NCBI GenBank assembly: GCA_000708835.1
Contig: DF236993.1
Span: 230,307 to 294,306 of the forward strand
Direction of reading: 5' to 3'
DNA length: 64,000 nucleotides
DNA from: Klebsormidium nitens
Lineage: Eukaryota > Plantae > Klebsormidiophyceae
In this document: positions 33,694 through 63,266 of the stretch, in pieces
Layout: the number at the start of each line of letters is the position of its first letter
Numbering within the stretch: position 1 is the stretch's first letter
Position numbers and translations under genes: made by a program
The notes under the pieces: model-generated
Seen by the model: only the letters and a program-made list of their open reading frames with translations
The model's database searches: none
Told to the model about the DNA's origin: nothing

Positions 33694-36600
33694 TCATCTC
33701 AGGCGCCTATAGTGCGGTTTGTACATGATCTCGTGTGCGAAAGCCATCAGGTCGTCGGGCTTTGGTAGTCGGGTTCCAAACCCTGCAGCAATTGGCAGCT
33801 GTAAGCACGTGGTTTCTTAGAAGCGTCCATCCGTCTTGCAAATCCGTATTGCAAGCAAAAGGAGCTCTGGGAGCACATCCATTGTGACTGCTTCTCTTGA
33901 CACTCTCGGTACATTGCTGCGCTCAGCAGTCAGGTTAACGATGTAATGAGAACCAATCCAAAAGAGGCCTCCAGAGCAAAATCTTTATATGAGCGTCTGC
34001 CGCCAGGCAAATTGAATCAAAATGGAGCGGTCTTTGTCATCCAGGCACTTCCTCAACGCAGCCACTCCAACTTCAAACCTTTCAGAAGAACCAGGGCATA
34101 CATGCAGAAAGGTTTACCTGCTTCGTACGACTTTTGAGCGACCGCCCTGGCGATGTGCGCCGAGATTGTCCGGATCTTCCAGAAGGGGGGGTAGATCTGG
34201 CCGCGCGCTCGGTCCTCGTCTTCCACCAGGCTCGCCAACGTGTCGGCTGCACATCATGACGTCAGCTAAAACACAGGCCTTTTTCACATCTTCCCCCAAA
34301 GGGAAACAGGAAAGACGTATGCAGAGGAGAGAAGTCCGGCAATGGAGGAACGTCAAAGACGAGCACTCAAAGACACAATAGGCATCGAGATCAGGAGAAC
34401 AAGTGAGAGCAGACAAGACCGTGTTGCCCAAGAATGCGAAAAGAGAAGGTTGACCCAAAATTGCAAACGAAGCGTCAGTGACGTCACCTGCTGCGAGAAA
34501 CATTTCGTCTCGTATCCGCGTTGTACCCGCGACCAACAACCCGAGGCCAATACCGGGGAATATGTACGCGTTGTTTGCCTGGAAGGAAAGAGAAAATGAG
34601 CTTGAGAAGATACGTCGCGAGAAATGACCCGACGGGAACATTGCTTGCGTCTTTTTCGTTCGCAGGTTAAGCAGAGTGCGAAAGGCACCAAGGAATTGTC
34701 AATGATAAGCAGGTTATTAGGGTCCGACCCCAAGAACGATCGCAAACAGCAACTCGCAACGGAACGCTCTGCGGAACAGATTGGCGGAGCGACGGAAAGG
34801 CTGAGGAGTACCTGGCTCGGCTGGAAGGTCTGCCCGAAGATCTCGACGGGCTTTGACGGGCTCGCGCTTGCAAAAATGCCGCGACCCTATAACGCAAAAC
34901 CCAGGTTGAGTCAGCCTAGACATACGCAGGTGAGCTGCGGCGATCGTGCATGCTGAAGGCCGAAACGGACTTGTAAGGCGGTGTGAGAAAGTACAGATAT
35001 TGAGTGCGCTATGCATCTGCGTCCTTTCGGCAATTAATTGGAACAACGGCCAGCTCCCTTCAATTAATTGGAACAACGGCCAGCTCCCTTCGACCTGGAT
35101 GCTGTACGTCGGCACTTCAACCAATCGAACCTTTGTCAACCCGAGAATGATACGAAGTGGATTGATTGGAAACTTCAGAAAACTTCGTCCGTTACTTCAA
35201 GTTGGTGACCTAATGCAGCGCATGTTCCCGCAGAACGACACGACCTTCAGAAGAGTATTACTGTGATGACGACCGCACTTTTCTGGATCACTGCGGCCGT
35301 TGAAAGCGGCCATAGCACTCCCTCCTTTGCTTTAATAGCTTCGCAATGCCAAAATAAGAATCTTCCAGAGCAAAACGAATCGCCCCGTCGTGAAACTCCT
35401 CGAAGCGTTCGTCTTTACCTGCGTGTGCTGGTACGCGTCCTCCGCAGAGCACTCGCCTTCTTCCGAAGACGCCGGGTTGGAGAGGGGGAAGAGTAGCGGC
35501 CGCTGGAAGAATGGCCGCTTATCTCTCATATCTCAAGATGAAAAAACGCCAGATATATCTGCTTGCTTACTTGTGTCTGTTCGCAATGTAAACAGGAAGG
35601 TTCGAGAACTCAGTAAAAGTGTTCGAGTCAACCTACAGACGCGCACCAAAAGAACGAGTTGCCACGTCGATGCTTACGAGAAGAGTGAATTTAGCGGCCC
35701 AGACTCGCGAATCCTTCCGTCACCACTTGACGTGAAAATAGCCCACCGACTGCAACCTTCCAAGTTACTCACTACGGAGAGGCGATTCGGAGGTTGCCCA
35801 TTTTCTAATAGGTTCAGGGCGGCCGTCATCACGAACTTTTCTAAATATCAATCTTAGATCCGACTATTGCGTATGAAAAGAGGACCTCAAAACCACAACC
35901 TGCCCAATTGCGACCTGGCAAAAAGGAGAGAAGGTCGAAGGAAAGGGTGGAATGACGTCCAGAAAAAAGTGCAGAGTTTCAGGTACATCCTTCCCATCGC
36001 TCTTCCCGCTCGTCTGGACGACAATATCGGCAGCCATACCGGCAAACCCTCGCCTCACGAATCCGGAGATCCAAGGACTTAAACGGTTGAACCCCGGGAT
36101 GCAAGCTACAGGAGCCTTGTTCCAGATCTCCAAGACTGATGGACCATGTGCAGATTTCCGTGCTTCTTTCTGTTGTCAATGTGCGTCGTTTTCTAAGTAC
36201 ACGTACCTTCACATTGAGCGCCATCTCCTCCAGGACTTGTTGTGTGAATGCGCCCCGGGGCGCAGACAGCCCGACCAATACGGTGGGCTTCACAACCTGG
36301 ATAAGCGAGTCGGGGAGCCTGCTGAGAGTTTTGCGGACCGTTTAGCATCCATTGAAGCGCCTCTTCAGAGAGATGTGCAGACTTCCTACTACTGATCAAG
36401 GGCCCTCGGATTGATCGTCTCGAGTCCGAGCGATGGAGATGCGAATGACTTTCTGGAAAAGATGTTACCCTGCAGCTGCTTCTCAGGAAGAAAAATCCCA
36501 AGGGCAAGCTCTGAGGGGCCGTCGGCGGGTGGGTCTCGTTTTAGACCGCAATTAATCTATCAAGAAACAGATTCTTTACATTCTGACTCACCAAGCTAGA

Positions 36601-39600
36601 GGCAATGCAGGCATTCAATATAGACCGCTCGGTACCATGTAAGCCATAATGCCTCCGACATACATAATTCGCCACAGAAAAAAACTGCCAGCCGTGCAGG
36701 ACGAAGGCGCACTTGTCCAGATTGTCCGGTTTTCCGAGCTCAATATAGGTGCACAATACTTACCAGTGCTCAGTGATCAGCAACCATCTCATTAAAAAAA
36801 GATCAACCGCCCTGCGAGCGGATGGGATAAGGAGAGCGGCGGACTCACCTTGACCGCCGCCAGGAGGTCGGGTGCCTCGGCGTTATTGTGGGCAAAGGGC
36901 AACTTATGGGGCCTCAGGTTTTCTGCACGTGCGCGCGTCACCAAACCCTGCAAAGAAGGAAAGTGTAAGCAATTGAAGGCTGTGGCAAATTGCCCATTCC
37001 CCCAAGCTGTTGTGGTCGATGGGATTGGCGGCCGTCGCTTCTCTCGTGCTACCTATGAGTCAATGATAATCGCAGCAACCAAAGAGAGTGTGTAACTATC
37101 TTTTCCATATCCAGACAACAAAAACCGGTGGGTGACCAAGGACGTAAGAATCGAAAGGCTGGTTCTACAAGGTCTCAGCACCTTGAAAAGGCAGCAAGGT
37201 TGGCGTCCTTTTCTGAAGTGAAGTGCTGAACTGGACTGACAAATCGGCTTGCTTTGAACTACGGTGAACTGAGGTGAGAAGTCAATTTCTTGAATAAGCA
37301 ACTTTTGGAAATGAAACGCACCTTTGAGTCTACGAAGCAGATCTTTTGCCGAGCTTCTTGGATGGTGATCTTGGCCTGTAAGAAGAGAGCCAGGTAAACA
37401 TTTGAGTCAAAGGAAGGGCTTCTAGTAAAGTCCGACTGGCTCGTTTTGAGTGCCAAACGCTTTCTTCAGACTAATCAAAGTGAACCAACGCCGATTCGTT
37501 CGCATGAGAAACTTGTCAGCAAACAAAGGTTTGAGAGCTTCCGGCTTTGATGAAGGTCCGGAGTAAAGATTCGAAGAAAGAGATGAGACCTATCCTTCAA
37601 GGCTGGTCAGCATGCGACAGATTGAGAAGATTTGGAGGATCTTCAAGGCGGTTGCACCACTGCCTTTTGATAAAGTACAGAAAATCCGCAGGTGCCAAAG
37701 CCTCTTCGTTGGTTTTCCTTTTTGTGTGCACGGATGGAGGGAGGATATGGACCTCGGCCGGTCCTTGAGAACCTCTTCAGACCCTCTCCGCTCCAGAGAA
37801 CCGACGGTTGACGTTGATTTTCTGGACCATCTAGTTGGGGAGTTGCAGCCGAGGACACGTTGCAGCCGCGTGTCCCGTTGACAAAGCGCGGGAAGTCCGC
37901 AATCTTCTTCCATCCGCTCTGTCCGAATCTCCCTTGACAAACGCGAATCACTCGGCAACGTTTTTGTTTCCGCTGGAGCGAAGGACAATGAAAAGGAGCC
38001 TCACCTCTCGGCTTATGCCGAGCGCCACCAGCTCCGCTATGCTGCACTCCAACTGCAGCAAATGGAAAGCATGACGTCAGCAGGGTAGGGTTGCAGCCAA
38101 CTCGCATAGACACTGACAATGAAGCTCAATGCTTAGGGTCGAGTGGCAGTCCTGCTGACAATCCAAACCACACACCCTGCTGGTTGGCAGAAAAGCTTCT
38201 CAAGTAGTCACTGAGACGTCAAACACTGGTCGGAGAGCGTTAGAGTCAGAGAGTATGCGCCAAGTATGGCCGATGAAGAACACGCAGCGCGCTTGGGACT
38301 CGATCGCGATTGCAAGACTACAGGCTTCGCTTATTGAATTGAAGTTCGGATCGATCTCAGAAACACCAGAATGAAACGTTTAGTTGACCCCAGAATAACT
38401 CCAGTCCTAAGAACCAGAAAGCTGATCAAAGACTTCAAAATTCAACCAACAAAAGTATCGCGTCAAACCAGGAGTCGACAATCTAGGCGAACCATACGGA
38501 CCACTTCGCAATTTGTGAACAGCCACGGTCTCTCACTTCTCCGGCGCCGGTGAAGAGATACGTGTGTTGCGAGACGGGACAGTTGGTGAGGGGCTGCGCT
38601 GCCTTGATGCCAGCCAGCAGAACCGCAGCAGTGCCCTGAATGTTGTCGTTGAATACTAGGTGACTGCCGCGATACTGGAAGTGCAACCGGTGCGCGTTAT
38701 GGTTTGCCAGGTCTTGGAACTGCAAAGGAAGAAGAGACTCGAGTAAGACCGCTATCAGAGATACTGCGTCGCTGTCCTGGATGTTGTCATCAAATACTAG
38801 GTGACTGCCGCGGTACTGAAAGTGCAACCGATGCGCGCTGTGATTGGCCAGGTGTTGGAACTGCGGAGGAAGGGAGAAACTCAATCAGGACCGCTTTGCC
38901 GATTTGCGCCAGTACTCTGAAGATTGCCGTTGAAGACTACATGGCTGCCGCCAACTTCTGACCGCTTGTCGACTATTGCGCCTGACCTTTGTCCGGAGTG
39001 GCTCCCAGATGCGTTTGCAGGTCCACGGGATAGATTTTTGATCAGTGGACGGCACAAAGAGAGTGCAGCCTGTAAGCTTCTGATCGCCTCAGGGGTTTAG
39101 ATCACCGGGCGCCGAGAACCTCAGCGGGCAAGCATGTGGTGAGAAAGATGTCACTACAAGAAGCAAGACAACTAGACGGGATGGTCCTGGAAGGGCACGG
39201 GATAATCAGAGCTTTGCAAACCTGAGTATCCAATATACTAGCGTGCATCAAGTGCGGCCCACCTGGATGAGGCACTTGTCGCCAAAACGCGCCTTGGCTG
39301 CCTCCATAAATTCGTCCAGCAACTCGTCGTACTCCTGAAGAGCAATCAACAACAGTTTTGATACGAACGCCGGAGCGCCGTCAACGAGACCCTCCTAAAG
39401 GACCTCCCTCGTTGACTGCCTGCCTTTGCCGGAAACTCCTTGAGTTTGACCGCCTTCAGATTGACCGCCTTTGTTACATAGGAGTATTCAGGCCTCGAGC
39501 TCTGAAGCAGCGACTGCGAAGAATAACCGGCTGTCGGGAAGAGAGGGTGGCACACGACGCACTGTCGACTCCTTCACACAAGCGGAACAACTCACTGGAA

Positions 39601-42600
39601 CGCAGCCCAGGGGCCGGCAAAATAGGCACGATATTGAGATCTGTTATATGCTAGTCCGCATGTATGAATCAATTGTAAGTACGTTAAGAACCGTAAACAA
39701 GCTCTCGGGCCCCTGGATTGAAGTGCGTGAGAAGAGCAAGCTACATCAGAGACCGGTCAAAGCTAACCTCTCCCTTAACCCGGCTATGCCGGACGCCTAT
39801 GTAGAAGGGGTCCTGCAGAAGCGCCTGGTTGTTCGTTCCCACGTCGATCATGACTGGGAGACACTGTACCGAGAAAGAAAGATCATCAGATCACCCATGG
39901 GTAAAATGTGCGCATCTCGTTGTTCGGAAGTCTTCACCACTTGTCGAAGCAAACCGCTTTTCGGTCTTCCGTTTGCCGTACGTGTTTTCCTCTGCCCATC
40001 ATGATAGTGCTTGTGTTTCTAGCACACCGTCATAGCTTCGACGGCGAAACGGAAGAAGCACGGAGAGACAGTCTGCCTCGTCGAAACGGTTCTGGCTGCC
40101 CAGAGCCTCCTTGCCGCTAAAGCGTCATGATTTCGTTTCCAAATGTGCTGCGGCGCTCTAGCAGCTTGAGGGTAACTCCTCCTGGTCGATCCTCTATAAC
40201 CCGCTTCCGAGCTACTGAATGCTCTCGAAACGCCACGTCAACGCTGCTCGAAGCATCCTAGCAGCCCAAAACCTCGCTACTTCGCTTCGTGAACGGCACC
40301 ACTTCAACTCGGACTTTGAGAGATCACAGCTCTCGGACGGCAGAAGGGGCGCTTCCCTTGGTTGGATAACGAAAATGCTTCGAGCGAACGTCTAGGCGGG
40401 GTGCCAAACGCCTCACCTCGGAAGGATTGATGCCCCCACACGCAGTGTACAGAGAAAGCTTGCCCACGGGGATCCCCATGCCCTGCACAAGCCACGTGGC
40501 AAAATGAGACGCGTCGACGCAGGCGGTTCAAGAAAAAGCGATAACTTGCGTCCACAATTACGATATGCGCATCTGGCAGTTGGCCCAGAGCAAACGAAGG
40601 CAAGGGGGGAAGAGTAGAGGAAGAGATGAGACTGCTTTCTTGTACTCGCAACTCGAATCTTAACGGCAATTAAAGTCGACACGTCCACAAGCTTGGACGA
40701 CAAGGCTAGTGGCTGTAGAGAAGGTTGTTAGAGTGCTCACGTTTGCACCCAGGTCCCCAAGTCCCATGATCTGCTCCCCGTCAGTGACCACGATGAAACG
40801 CACCCGCTTCTCCGGCCAGTTCTTCAGGAGGGTCAACACGCGGCCCCTGCATGTACAAAGAACGGGATTACGACAAAGATGATTGTTTGAGATCGATCGT
40901 GTGTCAACGGTTTAAGTTACTGCTCAAACCCGTTCGATAGAATTATGTGCAGTTCATAACACTTCTTTGAGTGAGAACGCACATCGACGGATCTCGGATG
41001 GTTCTGACGACTTGAGGAGGAACAATGTCGATTCTCTGACGTCGAGCGAATGGTTGAAGTCCTTGTCGAGGGACTCTGAAAAGCTTCTGAGCACCTGTCA
41101 CAGTAACCAGATAGTGCACGACTTTGCGCATGCTGATTGTGGCCTCCCAGGCAGGGACAACGGTGTTTTGCGAAACGGCAGCATTTCACTCAAACAGTTT
41201 GTGCGCAAAGCCCTCCTCAATGTTCTTCAATATTTGATCCGCATAGGAGACCAAGCAACCACACAGAAAGCTATACGGGCAAGGCGTGAACACCACCAGC
41301 AATAGGCTTCAAATCCATATTCTCCCCGCTGTTGATCCTTACGTCAAAAGATCTCGTCGACCTGCAAATGGAACACGGACTGACTCGCATAGTCCGTAGC
41401 ATGCCAACGGACACTTTCGGACCCAAGGGTTGGCATTCGTGTTGGAACATTTACTTGTCGTTGTTGGTGATGAAGATGCCACGTGGTCGTCGGAAGAGCA
41501 GCCCGTAGCGCCGGCAGGCGAGGCCCACGGTGGGGCCGCTGATGATTGGCATCAGATCCTCAATGTAGTCGAGCAACACCCGGTAGAACAGCCGCTCATT
41601 GCGCTCCTGCGTAAAATGATGCAACATGTCTTCTGAAACGTCGATCTGAATTCGGAAATTTCTCCTGTTGCTAGTCATTCTGCTGAGTTCGTGTTGTTTG
41701 AGTTACAACAGCCGCTGACAGAGCCCCCGCAGAGAGTGACGCAACAACAATCTGGGACTCCGTTTACAGACTTAGAAGGAACGATAAGGGGCGACCTTGT
41801 TCTTCAATTTGTCTTGAAGTTGTTCTCTCTCAACAATGAGGACTGGCACGAGTTGGGCTTGTTCCCTAGTGAGCCTCTTTCCAGCGGAAGCATCTGCTGA
41901 ATGTTGAAGTCCTGCATTTATAGATCTGACATGTATCTTAAGTTCCGTGGACTTTAATACAAAGAGTAAACTTCTGTGACTTGATTGACACCTCCCAGCC
42001 ACAACAGTGAATCAGCTAAGGTATGTGCAAGCAGGTCTGCCCCCAGCAGAAATACAGGCCTTTGAGTAGACATGGGATGAACAAATTCTGGCCGCAAGCA
42101 CATAAGCAGTGGCTCCTTCAAATTCTTGTCTCAGCACTAGAGAACAAGTGATCTTTTGGAACTTACTTGGAGGGACATCAAGTGGCTGTACTTGTGTAGG
42201 TTCGAGGTGTACTCCTTCAAGTTCTCGAGGACTCTTTCAACCTGCAAGACCGGGCCGTCTGTCATATCCAAGTTACCGGGCACTTTCATCGACACCATGA
42301 TGTTCTCTATGATACATGACGACCTTTACGCTGGTGAACACAATTCAGTGAGGGCTCAACGATAGGGCGCATACTTTTCCTCGTTGAAAAGGGCCCTAGC
42401 CATATCACATGAGGAACCCTTTGGAGACATAGGGCAAAGTGCCTCGCATTCGGTACAGTTCACCTAGTAATGTTTCAGACCTGGTCAGATGCACTTTCTT
42501 CACGGGTGGCACCAGAATCCGGACATTGACCAAACCAGAAGTAACTGATTAGAACCAGACGATACAAAGGAAAGTACCTGCAAGTCTTGTGTCATGTATG

Positions 42601-43321
42601 CAGGTGGCAGTAGTCCCAGAAGGTAGCTGGCTTCCCTCTCAGCCGGAGTGAATGCCATGCCCTTGTTGTACTTGGGATTGCGCAGAAGGTCAACCCCACT
42701 GCAAATGAAGAAGTCAGCATCAAGAGACATTTTATGTGGCGCAGAAGTTGAGAGTAATCAGAAGGAAAGCGGCCAGAGACCCGCCGCAACCTGACTTTGT
42801 TCCCTTGAGAACCTGCCTGCATTTTGTGTTACGCATCATTCGTTGAGGGGAATGCTGGCAGGTGTCATGTCGCATCGAAAGTTGGCTTGCAATAGCAGGA
42901 GTTTCATGAAGTTGATGCAGTCAAGCCTGGAAACATTGGGCCAGAGAGGTGTTGATGACGCCCACATTATACACACTGATCTCAATTGAACTTATCTCGT
43001 TCAAGTCAACCTGGTCGGCTTTGCTGGAAAATGTGCTTCAAGCCGAAGCAGCTACGGCTTGCCTCAATTTGCCTTCAGACCTTCAATGTATATTGAAGTT
43101 CTTTGTTGCCTGACTAACCTTGACACGGTTCGTACCCAAGGTGTGGCTGGTCGCTCAACATCTTCCTCTTTCACTTGGCCCCAAGTGTCCGAGTTGAAGC
43201 TCCGGACGGCCAGGCCCTCAAACGAGCCGGACGCTTCAGGTTTTGCTGCGCAAGGAATGTGGTGATTCGCAATCACACTCCGCCTCAAAATGCTGCTCAA
43301 GTGTCTAGTAAACCCGGCCAT
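33694..43321 (-). CDS. Malic enzyme homologue (plant NADP-ME-like), about 18-19 exons, catalytic residues substituted
   Basis: [131 protein letters not shown]. The splice phases I traced are consistent. Confidence 0.93.
35031..35090. repeat. Perfect 30-bp tandem duplication in a malic enzyme intron
   Basis: CAATTAATTGGAACAACGGCCAGCTCCCTT occurs twice in direct succession. Confidence 0.95.
38765..38875 (-). repeat. In-frame intronic copy of the acceptor and first ~30 codons of a malic enzyme exon
   Basis: CAG|TTCCAACACCTGGCC at 38860 versus the real CAG|TTCCAAGACCTGGCA at 38719. Confidence 0.92.
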
Positions 43322-63193: not shown

Positions 63194-63266
63194 GCTCGTG
63201 TAACTCAGTGGATAGAGTGTCTCTTTCCTAAGGAGAAAGTCGAAGGTTCGACCCCTTCCTCGAGCA
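63194..63266 (+). tRNA. tRNA-Arg (anticodon CCT)
   Basis: Cloverleaf: acceptor GCTCGTG/CTCGAGC, D-stem ACTC/GAGT, anticodon stem TCTCT/GGAGA with loop TTCCTAA, T-stem GAAGG/CCTTC with TTCGA. Upstream CAACAAC motif and downstream TTTT terminator. Confidence 0.95.

Follow-up and report, generated by a model that had tools for sequence, protein, structure and literature searches.

Malic enzyme (ME) is a textbook enzyme of central metabolism, with a catalytic machinery that is portrayed as all but invariant. In the residue numbering of human ME2, which is used here, Glu255, Asp256 and residue 279 are the metal ligands, Arg165, Tyr112, Lys183, Asn421, Asn466 and Asn467 contact a substrate analogue (PMC7847962), and Tyr112 and Arg165 have been called catalytic (PMC13461788). 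A departure from this scheme is known from the C4 Cleomaceae Gynandropsis gynandra and Cleome angustifolia, in which NAD-ME beta1 is an expressed paralogue of intact fold that carries Ser for Tyr112 and Val for Asp278. The recombinant beta1 protein is inactive, and beta1 stabilises and regulates the alpha subunit (Hudig et al., bioRxiv 10.1101/2021.06.16.448762). In the literature on ME pseudoenzymes and on Klebsormidium ME nothing relevant was found beyond the Cleome work. Here, an ME gene of the alga Klebsormidium nitens is described, which lies in a 64-kb stretch of scaffold DF236993.1 (assembly GCA_000708835.1), referred to as the window. Its product, protein P0162, is likely to be an expressed, selected and non-catalytic protein of ME fold, and to represent the single member found in K. 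nitens of an old, probably organelle-targeted ME branch.

Exons 4 and 9 were aligned singly to solved ME structures with HMMER. The alignments were free of gaps relative to human ME2, and the position in the K. nitens protein equals the ME2 position plus a constant offset of 44. The original prediction had named five active-site substitutions and had proposed an alignment to ME structures as a check. All five were found where they had been placed, on the minus strand, the alignment showed the substitutions, and Lys183 of the GIPVGK motif was present (Table 1). The acid/base pair Tyr112/Lys183 is thus incomplete, with Ser for Tyr and the lysine present. The metal carboxylates Glu255/Asp256/Asp279 read Gln/Asp/Asn, so that one of three carboxylates remains. 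The dinucleotide turn, G-A-G-E-L-E in P0162, fails the GxGxx(G/A) pattern; it is also altered at Ala315, which is Leu, and at Gly318, which is Ser. Lys183, Asp256, Asp278, Asn421, Asn466 and Asn467 are all kept.

About 350-376 further MEs of plant, animal and bacterial origin were aligned to gauge how strongly these positions are conserved. Tyr112 was found in 98% of the sequences, Arg165 in 98%, Glu255 in 99.7% and Asp279 in 99.5%. In the dinucleotide motif the other sequences have Gly, Ala, Ser or Asn (Ile once) at the third position, and Glu, the residue of P0162, was present in 0 of 355. P0162 differs at 9 of the 84 columns conserved to at least 97% (Tyr112, Thr113, Arg165, Leu167, Glu255, Phe257, Leu266, Asp279 and Gly318) and is intact at the other 75, while the median ME differs at none. 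Sequences exceeding nine departures show runs of consecutive mismatches, which are typical of mis-predicted gene models. Six of the nine departures fall within the 13 of the 84 columns that the literature names as active site (hypergeometric P = 2.8e-4, a value that is indicative only, because the residue list was compiled during the analysis). The earlier view that the substitutions are aimed at the active site while the scaffold is kept agrees with this distribution.

The residues are encoded by an intact gene, as had been proposed for exactly this span. The gene comprises 18 exons from ATG to stop (33694-43321, minus strand), with a coding sequence of 1833 nucleotides (nt) for 610 amino acids. 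GT-AG ends are present at 17 of 17 introns, no splice dinucleotide of the 34 is damaged, and the reading frame is unbroken. The modelled product is 100% identical, over its full length, to the annotated K. nitens protein P0162, which is listed as "malate dehydrogenase". Both Pfam domains are present at full length, namely malic (PF00390, positions 1-182 of 182, E 7e-71) and Malic_M (PF03949, positions 1-257 of 258, E 3e-79).

Transcription of the gene was examined in public sequencing data. Twenty runs from 7 studies contained 0.11-0.19 of the words sampled from positions 37200-43100 of the window, where the exon share is 0.165. Each of four studies yielded one contig of 1.3-1.5 kb that lacked introns 2 to 10. 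The nine contig joints matched the modelled introns to the base, including the GAGE/LECS junction, and the loose ends of the contigs entered exons 1 and 12. In exons 2-11 there were zero letter differences between the four-study contigs and the genome. As the contigs lack introns and have exact joints, the ME gene is transcribed and spliced as annotated; the contigs also demonstrate that the GAGE/LECS junction is real and that the intronic repeats described below are removed by splicing. The spliced cDNA that had been suggested as a check is therefore represented by these contigs over nine introns. No transcript with canonical residues was present among the contigs from the four studies, which are blind to rare isoforms. 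Run X1 additionally gave low-depth contigs within introns 8 and 10 (38861-39114 and 37729-37988), presumably from unspliced precursor, and one of these intronic contigs carried a G to A change at 39008.

Intron 8 contains a tandem triplication with a period of 141 nt (47 codons), each unit of which consists of the acceptor region followed by about 100 nt from the start of exon 9. The intronic copies are referred to as echo 2 and echo 3 (Table 1). The acceptor of echo 2 is an intact polypyrimidine-AG, and the reading runs in frame into exon 9, so that its use would insert 47 residues. No use of this acceptor was found in the RNA contigs of the four studies, in which echo 2 is spliced out. The statement of the original prediction that the intronic echo shows the same Q and N was borne out, since position 299 is CAA and position 323 is AAC in echo 2, and the latter is AAT in echo 3. 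By parsimony, Gln299 and Asn323 appear to predate the last common sequence of the copies, whether this dates from duplication or from gene conversion. Because the echoes carry both changes, these would be older than the duplication, which is now 15% diverged. Exon 9 alone is echoed, and neither a second ME copy nor further echoes were found within the window. The same exon piece also occurs twice in the Closterium-like gene models P0001 and P0003, which belong to the nearest canonical relatives; this may reflect an independent duplication of the same part of the gene or an artefact of model or assembly.

As no orthologue was available, the intronic echo was used as an internal clock. Exon and echo differ by replacements at six codons (300, 305, 321, 326, 327 and 328). 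In 6 of 6 polarisable codons the residue conserved in the family was kept by the exon and lost by the echo (one-sided P = 0.016). The divergence between exon and echo corresponds to about 0.05-0.135 substitutions per site per lineage, and 3.5% of the possible single changes in the coding sequence produce a stop. Under neutrality about 3-9 nonsense hits and 3-9 splice-dinucleotide hits would be expected, with indels extra, and 0 were observed. The probability of zero disabling hits under neutrality lies between 3e-3 and 2e-8. A decaying pseudogene is unlikely because the exon kept the six polarisable residues and the 1833-nt frame stayed open. The comparison indicates, from a small sample, that purifying selection has acted on the ME gene at a time when two metal ligands of its protein were already gone. 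The original claim of a selected gene is strengthened by this constraint on the amino acids of exon 9 after Gln299 and Asn323 arose, with 0 of 6 replacements on the exon. The result agrees in direction with the clustering of changes in the active site, the preserved presequence and the evidence for expression. It was also considered whether echo 2 itself is coding; the 9-10 synonymous versus 3-6 replacement codons were not significant once transition bias was allowed for, so that this idea was rejected and the conclusion is based on the polarised comparison.

The AlphaFold model of P0162 had a predicted template modelling (TM) score of 0.85, which, for a model drawn from the family alignment, means that the sequence is compatible with the ME fold and is not proof of folding. 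The model was confident save for residues 1-56, which are disordered, and a two-residue insertion. With Foldseek it matched the NADP-MEs of maize (5OU5) and sorghum (6C7N) at a TM score of 0.94. The insertion (35464-35469, codons 467-468) lies directly after S-N-P, where the other sequences read SNPTSxSEC, and is unique to P0162 in the alignment; residues 465-469 form the only low-confidence loop of the model core. Erosion of the sequence differs between the domains. Domain A is helical and makes the dimer contact in MEs of known structure. Here P0162 was 0.73 identical to the canonical clade members, a degree of conservation on a par with the 0.75 between liverworts and zygnematophytes. The corresponding values were 0.72 and 0.81 for domain B and 0.55 and 0.65 for the nucleotide-binding domain C, which is the most eroded.

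A maximum-likelihood tree (LG+C20) was calculated from 40 sequences with animal MEs as root. The streptophyte NADP-type MEs formed two clades, the canonical plant NADP-ME clade (node support 97/89) and a sister clade, here called clade X (100/99). At the base of the canonical clade stands P0276, whose 90%-identity cluster contains P0484 (GAQ79420.1), a second protein of K. nitens. It is 54% identical to P0162, lacks a presequence and carries all of the canonical motifs. Within clade X, P0162 is basal, followed by zygnematophytes (three Closterium strains and transcripts), liverworts (Calypogeia and Riccia) and ferns (Adiantum, Ceratopteris and a cluster with Pteridium). As this branching mirrors the species tree, P0162 is taken to be the K. 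nitens orthologue of an ancient paralogue. The partial Chara braunii protein P0002 stands outside the tree and was assigned to clade X by its 61-65% identity to members. It was considered as a closer relative of P0162 and rejected, as it has canonical residues and no special closeness to P0162. The terminal branch of P0162 measures 0.82 substitutions per site, compared to 0.47-0.75 for the sister lineages from the same node, and is thus the longest without being a runaway. The NADP-ME-like placement rests on 54-66% identity to NADP-type enzymes, the NAD-MEs being outside the tree.

The N-termini of clade X are basic, with a net charge of +3 to +5 in the first 20 residues in 8 of 9 examined and +1 in Riccia, while those of the canonical cytosolic MEs are acidic. 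P0162 has +3 in the first 20 residues, and its first acidic residue is at position 29. The basic N-termini suggest an organellar location of clade X, which judged from these sequences is probably organelle-targeted; the presequence-like N-terminus noted earlier for P0162, basic and disordered, is thus a trait found across the clade. In the Closterium proteins P0005, P0272 and P0273 an N-terminal thioredoxin-like fusion (PF00085) is predicted, and GMAIAVGK is present in place of GMGIPVGK. The fusion may be an artefact of the gene models, as the NIES-68 model P0151 is without it.

In searches seeded from clade X, mosses, lycophytes and seed plants yielded no member that placed ahead of the canonical enzymes, and no second clade X member was found in K. 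nitens. A description of the clade was not found in the papers on ME phylogeny that were consulted, and it apparently has been overlooked by plant ME phylogenies. The combination Ser/Gln/Gln/Asn/Glu occurred in no other sequence when exon 9 was searched against 1.84 billion representatives or when the full protein or residues 134-375 were used, which describes the searched data and does not prove absence. The orthologues with the same substitutions, for which a search in other streptophyte algae had been suggested as a check, did not turn up. Beyond alignments of about 50 residues, identity did not exceed 66%, except for a short Closterium fragment with 79% over 52 residues.

Departures from the canonical active site were also present elsewhere in clade X. 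Closterium, the liverworts and Chara, the latter read from a partial sequence, have a canonical site. The fern sequences (P0158, P0159, P0160, P0355, P0478 and P0479; loci L002, L004 and L005) share the changes Asp278 to Gly, Gly282 to Ala and Thr283 to Val. Asn421 to His and Asn467 to Ser were found in 5 of 5 ferns covering these sites (Adiantum, the Pteridium protein and three transcripts); the partial Ceratopteris protein has the changes at Asp278, Gly282 and Thr283 and ends before Asn421 and Asn467. The ratio of nonsynonymous to synonymous substitution rates (dN/dS) of three fern transcripts was 0.08-0.09, which marks them as functional proteins with a non-canonical active site. The Trinity transcript P0157 (690 amino acids) groups with the zygnematophytes, from which it probably originates. 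It carries Phe257 to Leu, Asn259 to Ala, Gly313 to Ser, Pro422 to His and Asn466 to His, with GGSETG for GAGEAG and S-N-H-E for S-N-P-T. By these sequences, clade X contains three independent departures, of which that of K. nitens is the most extreme.

Compared to Cleome beta1, which belongs to the mitochondrial NAD-ME beta lineage and shows a recent, C4-associated change, P0162 lies on an NADP-ME-like branch. Beta1 has two key substitutions, kept metal and nucleotide sites and a known alpha partner, whereas P0162 has kept Asp278 and lost Arg165, two metal ligands and the nucleotide motif. Maize 5OU5, sorghum 6C7N and P0484 share with P0162 the Pfam domains, the predicted fold and the C-terminal signature at 53-55% identity, but they keep every catalytic, metal and nucleotide residue, and P0162 stands in the separate sister clade with a basic N-terminal extension. 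Human ME2 (1EFK/1PJ2 series) has Lys183, Asp256, Asp278 and Asn421/466/467 in common with P0162 and differs at Tyr112, Thr113, Arg165, Leu167, Glu255, Phe257, Asp279, Ala315, 316 and Gly318. The fern members of clade X resemble P0162 in an intact fold, losses of near-invariant active-site residues, purifying selection and a basic N-terminus (three fern sequences checked); unlike P0162, they keep Tyr112, Arg165, the three metal ligands and the glycine motif.

Table 1. Exons, active-site codons and intronic echoes of the K. nitens ME gene, in positions of the window
Feature	Position	Strand	Remarks
Exon 1	43119-43321	-	Start codon, basic presequence-like N-terminus, first conserved core (TPWV); loose end of RNA contig matches 3' end
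Exon 2	42578-42698	-	Gene model; RNA joint
Exon 3	42167-42241	-	Gene model; RNA joints
Exon 4	41455-41606	-	Holds Ser156-Gly157; gene model and RNA contigs
Ser156-Gly157	41540-41535	-	Replace Tyr112 (general acid)-Thr113; exon 4
Exon 5	40741-40846	-	Reads D-G-E-Q-I-M-G; gene model and RNA contigs
Gln209	40773-40771	-	Replaces Arg165 (substrate binding); exon 5
Gln209-Ile210-Met211 codons	40773-40765	-	Leu167 to Met at 211
Exon 6	40417-40482	-	GMGIPVGK, catalytic Lys183 kept; gene model and RNA contigs
Lys227	40461-40459	-	Catalytic Lys183, kept; GIPVGK, exon 6
Exon 7	39768-39863	-	Gene model and RNA contigs
Exon 8	39263-39334	-	Gene model and RNA contigs
Echo 3	38890-38951	-	Oldest copy, partial, from the 5' end of exon 9; Asp279 position encoded by AAT (Asn)
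Echo 2	38720-38872	-	In frame with exon 9; 85% identical; CAA (Gln299), AAC (Asn323)
Exon 9	38537-38719	-	F-Q-D-L, N-D-N-I-Q-G-T, G-A-G-E; gene model and RNA contigs
F-Q-D-L	38719-38708	-	Replaces F-E-D-F; exon 9
Gln299-Asp300-Leu301 codons	38716-38708	-	Metal ligand Glu255 to Gln, Asp256 kept, Phe257 to Leu
N-D-N	38650-38642	-	Replaces N-D-D; exon 9
Asp322-Asn323 codons	38647-38642	-	Asp278 (partner of Lys183) kept; metal ligand Asp279 to Asn
GAGE/LECS	38548-38537 + 38052-38041	-	Replaces dinucleotide turn GAGEAGTG; across exon 9/10 junction
Exon 10	38005-38052	-	Begins L-E-C-S versus A-G-T-G of other MEs; gene model and RNA contigs
Glu360	38049-38047	-	Third position (last glycine) of dinucleotide motif; exon 10
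Exon 11	37322-37375	-	Gene model and RNA contigs
Exon 12	36849-36947	-	Gene model; loose end of RNA contig matches its start
Exon 13	36207-36296	-	Gene model; identity to annotated protein
Exon 14	35419-35502	-	L-S-N-P-A; Asn421 kept (Asn464), Thr423 to Ala, 2-residue insertion
Exon 15	34812-34886	-	Gene model; identity to annotated protein
Exon 16	34488-34578	-	A-N-N-A-Y; Asn466 and Asn467 kept
Exon 17	34118-34246	-	Gene model; identity to annotated protein
Exon 18 and stop codon	33694-33782	-	Gene model; identity to annotated protein

In the locus, L001 when read with the gene forward, the ME gene is preceded by a gene with a hit to the Mt_ATP_synt family (mitochondrial ATP synthase) and by an epimerase/NmrA-type gene, and is followed downstream by two genes without any Pfam match. 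A tRNA gene (63194-63266, plus strand; RF00005, 62 bits) is the sole Rfam match in the window.

Several other explanations of the altered site were weighed. Mis-joined exons, sequencing errors in the key codons or a canonical alternative exon would make the finding an artefact, and the in-frame echoes of exon 9 with their intact acceptors could in principle serve as alternative exons. The contigs of four studies use the modelled junctions and are identical to the genome letter by letter in exons 2-11, and the echoes carry Gln and Asn instead of canonical residues. The artefact is refuted for the main transcript, and its overall probability is close to nil. An ordinary, if sluggish, malic enzyme in which the substitutions are tolerated or compensated would fit the overall identity of 54-66% to active enzymes and the presence of Lys183 and Asp256. 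This is highly improbable, as five independently essential positions are changed, each of them 97-100% conserved in animals, plants and bacteria, as published structures put the changed positions at the metal, the substrate analogue or the cofactor, and as the paralogue P0484 of the same alga keeps all five. Scarcely more credible is a transcribed, unprocessed pseudogene that is decaying and has no frame-breaking lesion yet. In favour of such a gene, P0162 has the longest terminal branch of clade X (0.82 versus 0.47-0.75), shares its substitutions with no orthologue and has lost many catalytic residues together. Against this stand the open 1833-nt frame and the 34 intact splice dinucleotides, the 75 of 84 near-invariant columns that are kept with losses concentrated in the active site (P = 3e-4), the presequence-like N-terminus and the spliced transcripts (runs in 7 studies, contigs from four). 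Moreover, Gln299 and Asn323 predate the 15% divergence, since when the exon acquired 0 of 6 replacements and 6-18 expected lesions are absent.

A neofunctionalised enzyme is unlikely as well, though less so than the other alternatives. In it the ME fold, with a pocket that is stripped of charge (Glu to Gln, Asp to Asn, Arg to Gln) and enlarged (Tyr to Ser, Thr to Gly), would bind and convert another substrate, which may be uncharged, and might or might not use metal and nucleotide. The Lys183-Asp278 pair, Asp256 and Asn421/466/467 are present, the changes are isosteric and not destructive, and purifying selection acted after they had arisen; the strongly constrained ferns with a differently remodelled site also fit a modified chemistry in clade X. 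However, the nucleotide turn is disrupted too (Ala315 to Leu, Glu at the third position, Gly318 to Ser), a report of an ME-family enzyme that functions in the absence of the Tyr/Lys pair and the three carboxylates was not found, and the same exchange of Tyr for Ser accompanies complete inactivity in Cleome beta1. Every change is a single-nucleotide step, so that the isosteric look may just reflect the genetic code. An expressed, selected and non-catalytic ME-fold protein remains the likely explanation of P0162.

Some points weigh against this explanation. The tests of selection draw on a single echo of 100 nt, with 15 differences and six polarised changes. A dN/dS estimate for the K. nitens gene was ruled out, as its nearest relatives are 64-66% identical and the synonymous sites would be saturated, and no orthologue from other Klebsormidiophyceae was found, so that the terminal branch of 0.82 stays unbroken. 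The RNA label of the runs is a guess, and it is the intron-less contigs that carry the evidence for transcription. Inactivity is deduced from the residue roles and one precedent. Gln and Asn can bind metal weakly, and with Lys183, Asp256, Asp278 and Asn421/466/467 kept an altered chemistry is conceivable. No likely partner is evident, because K. nitens appears to have no second clade X member and its canonical protein P0484 seems to be cytosolic.

From the roles of the lost residues and the Cleome precedent, the metal- and NAD(P)-dependent oxidative decarboxylation of malate has very probably been lost in P0162. With Tyr112, Arg165, two metal carboxylates and the nucleotide turn gone, malate would not be decarboxylated, and the protein would act through oligomer contacts or the binding of ligands. 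Modelled on Cleome beta1, its role could be that of a stabilising or regulatory partner, or of a metabolite-binding module, inside an organelle. This mode of action is the weakest part of the account, being speculation by analogy, and a homo-oligomeric role in ligand binding or scaffolding is, equally speculatively, at least as likely as a Cleome-style heteromer. By its sequence P0162 corresponds to the general definition of a pseudoenzyme, that is, an enzyme homologue without essential residues that has a spliced mRNA and appears to be under purifying selection. The pseudoenzyme reading of the original prediction thus finds support in an intact, expressed and constrained gene without essential residues, from which we infer inactivity. 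Tentatively, and with a smaller chance of being right, the idea may be extended to clade X as a whole. This branch, present in Klebsormidium, Chara, zygnematophytes, liverworts and ferns, may have given up the canonical site at least three times under constraint and might have a conserved non-decarboxylating function, e.g., sensing of malate, fumarate or NAD(P), or scaffolding in an organelle.

Non-catalytic ME paralogues are already known from Cleome, so that P0162 is not new in kind. Judged from the sequences compared here, the K. nitens case differs in its independent origin, in belonging to another subfamily, in a different and more complete loss and in the lack of an obvious partner. It would be a second, independent and much more thorough case of a non-catalytic ME, in a model alga near the origin of land plants, and it points to an ME branch whose active site was repeatedly remodelled. 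If P0162 proves to bind metabolites or partners without catalysis, it would offer a tractable system for the transition from enzyme to regulator. If the explanation is true, such genes of algae, liverworts and ferns should not readily be entered as "malic enzyme" when metabolism is reconstructed.

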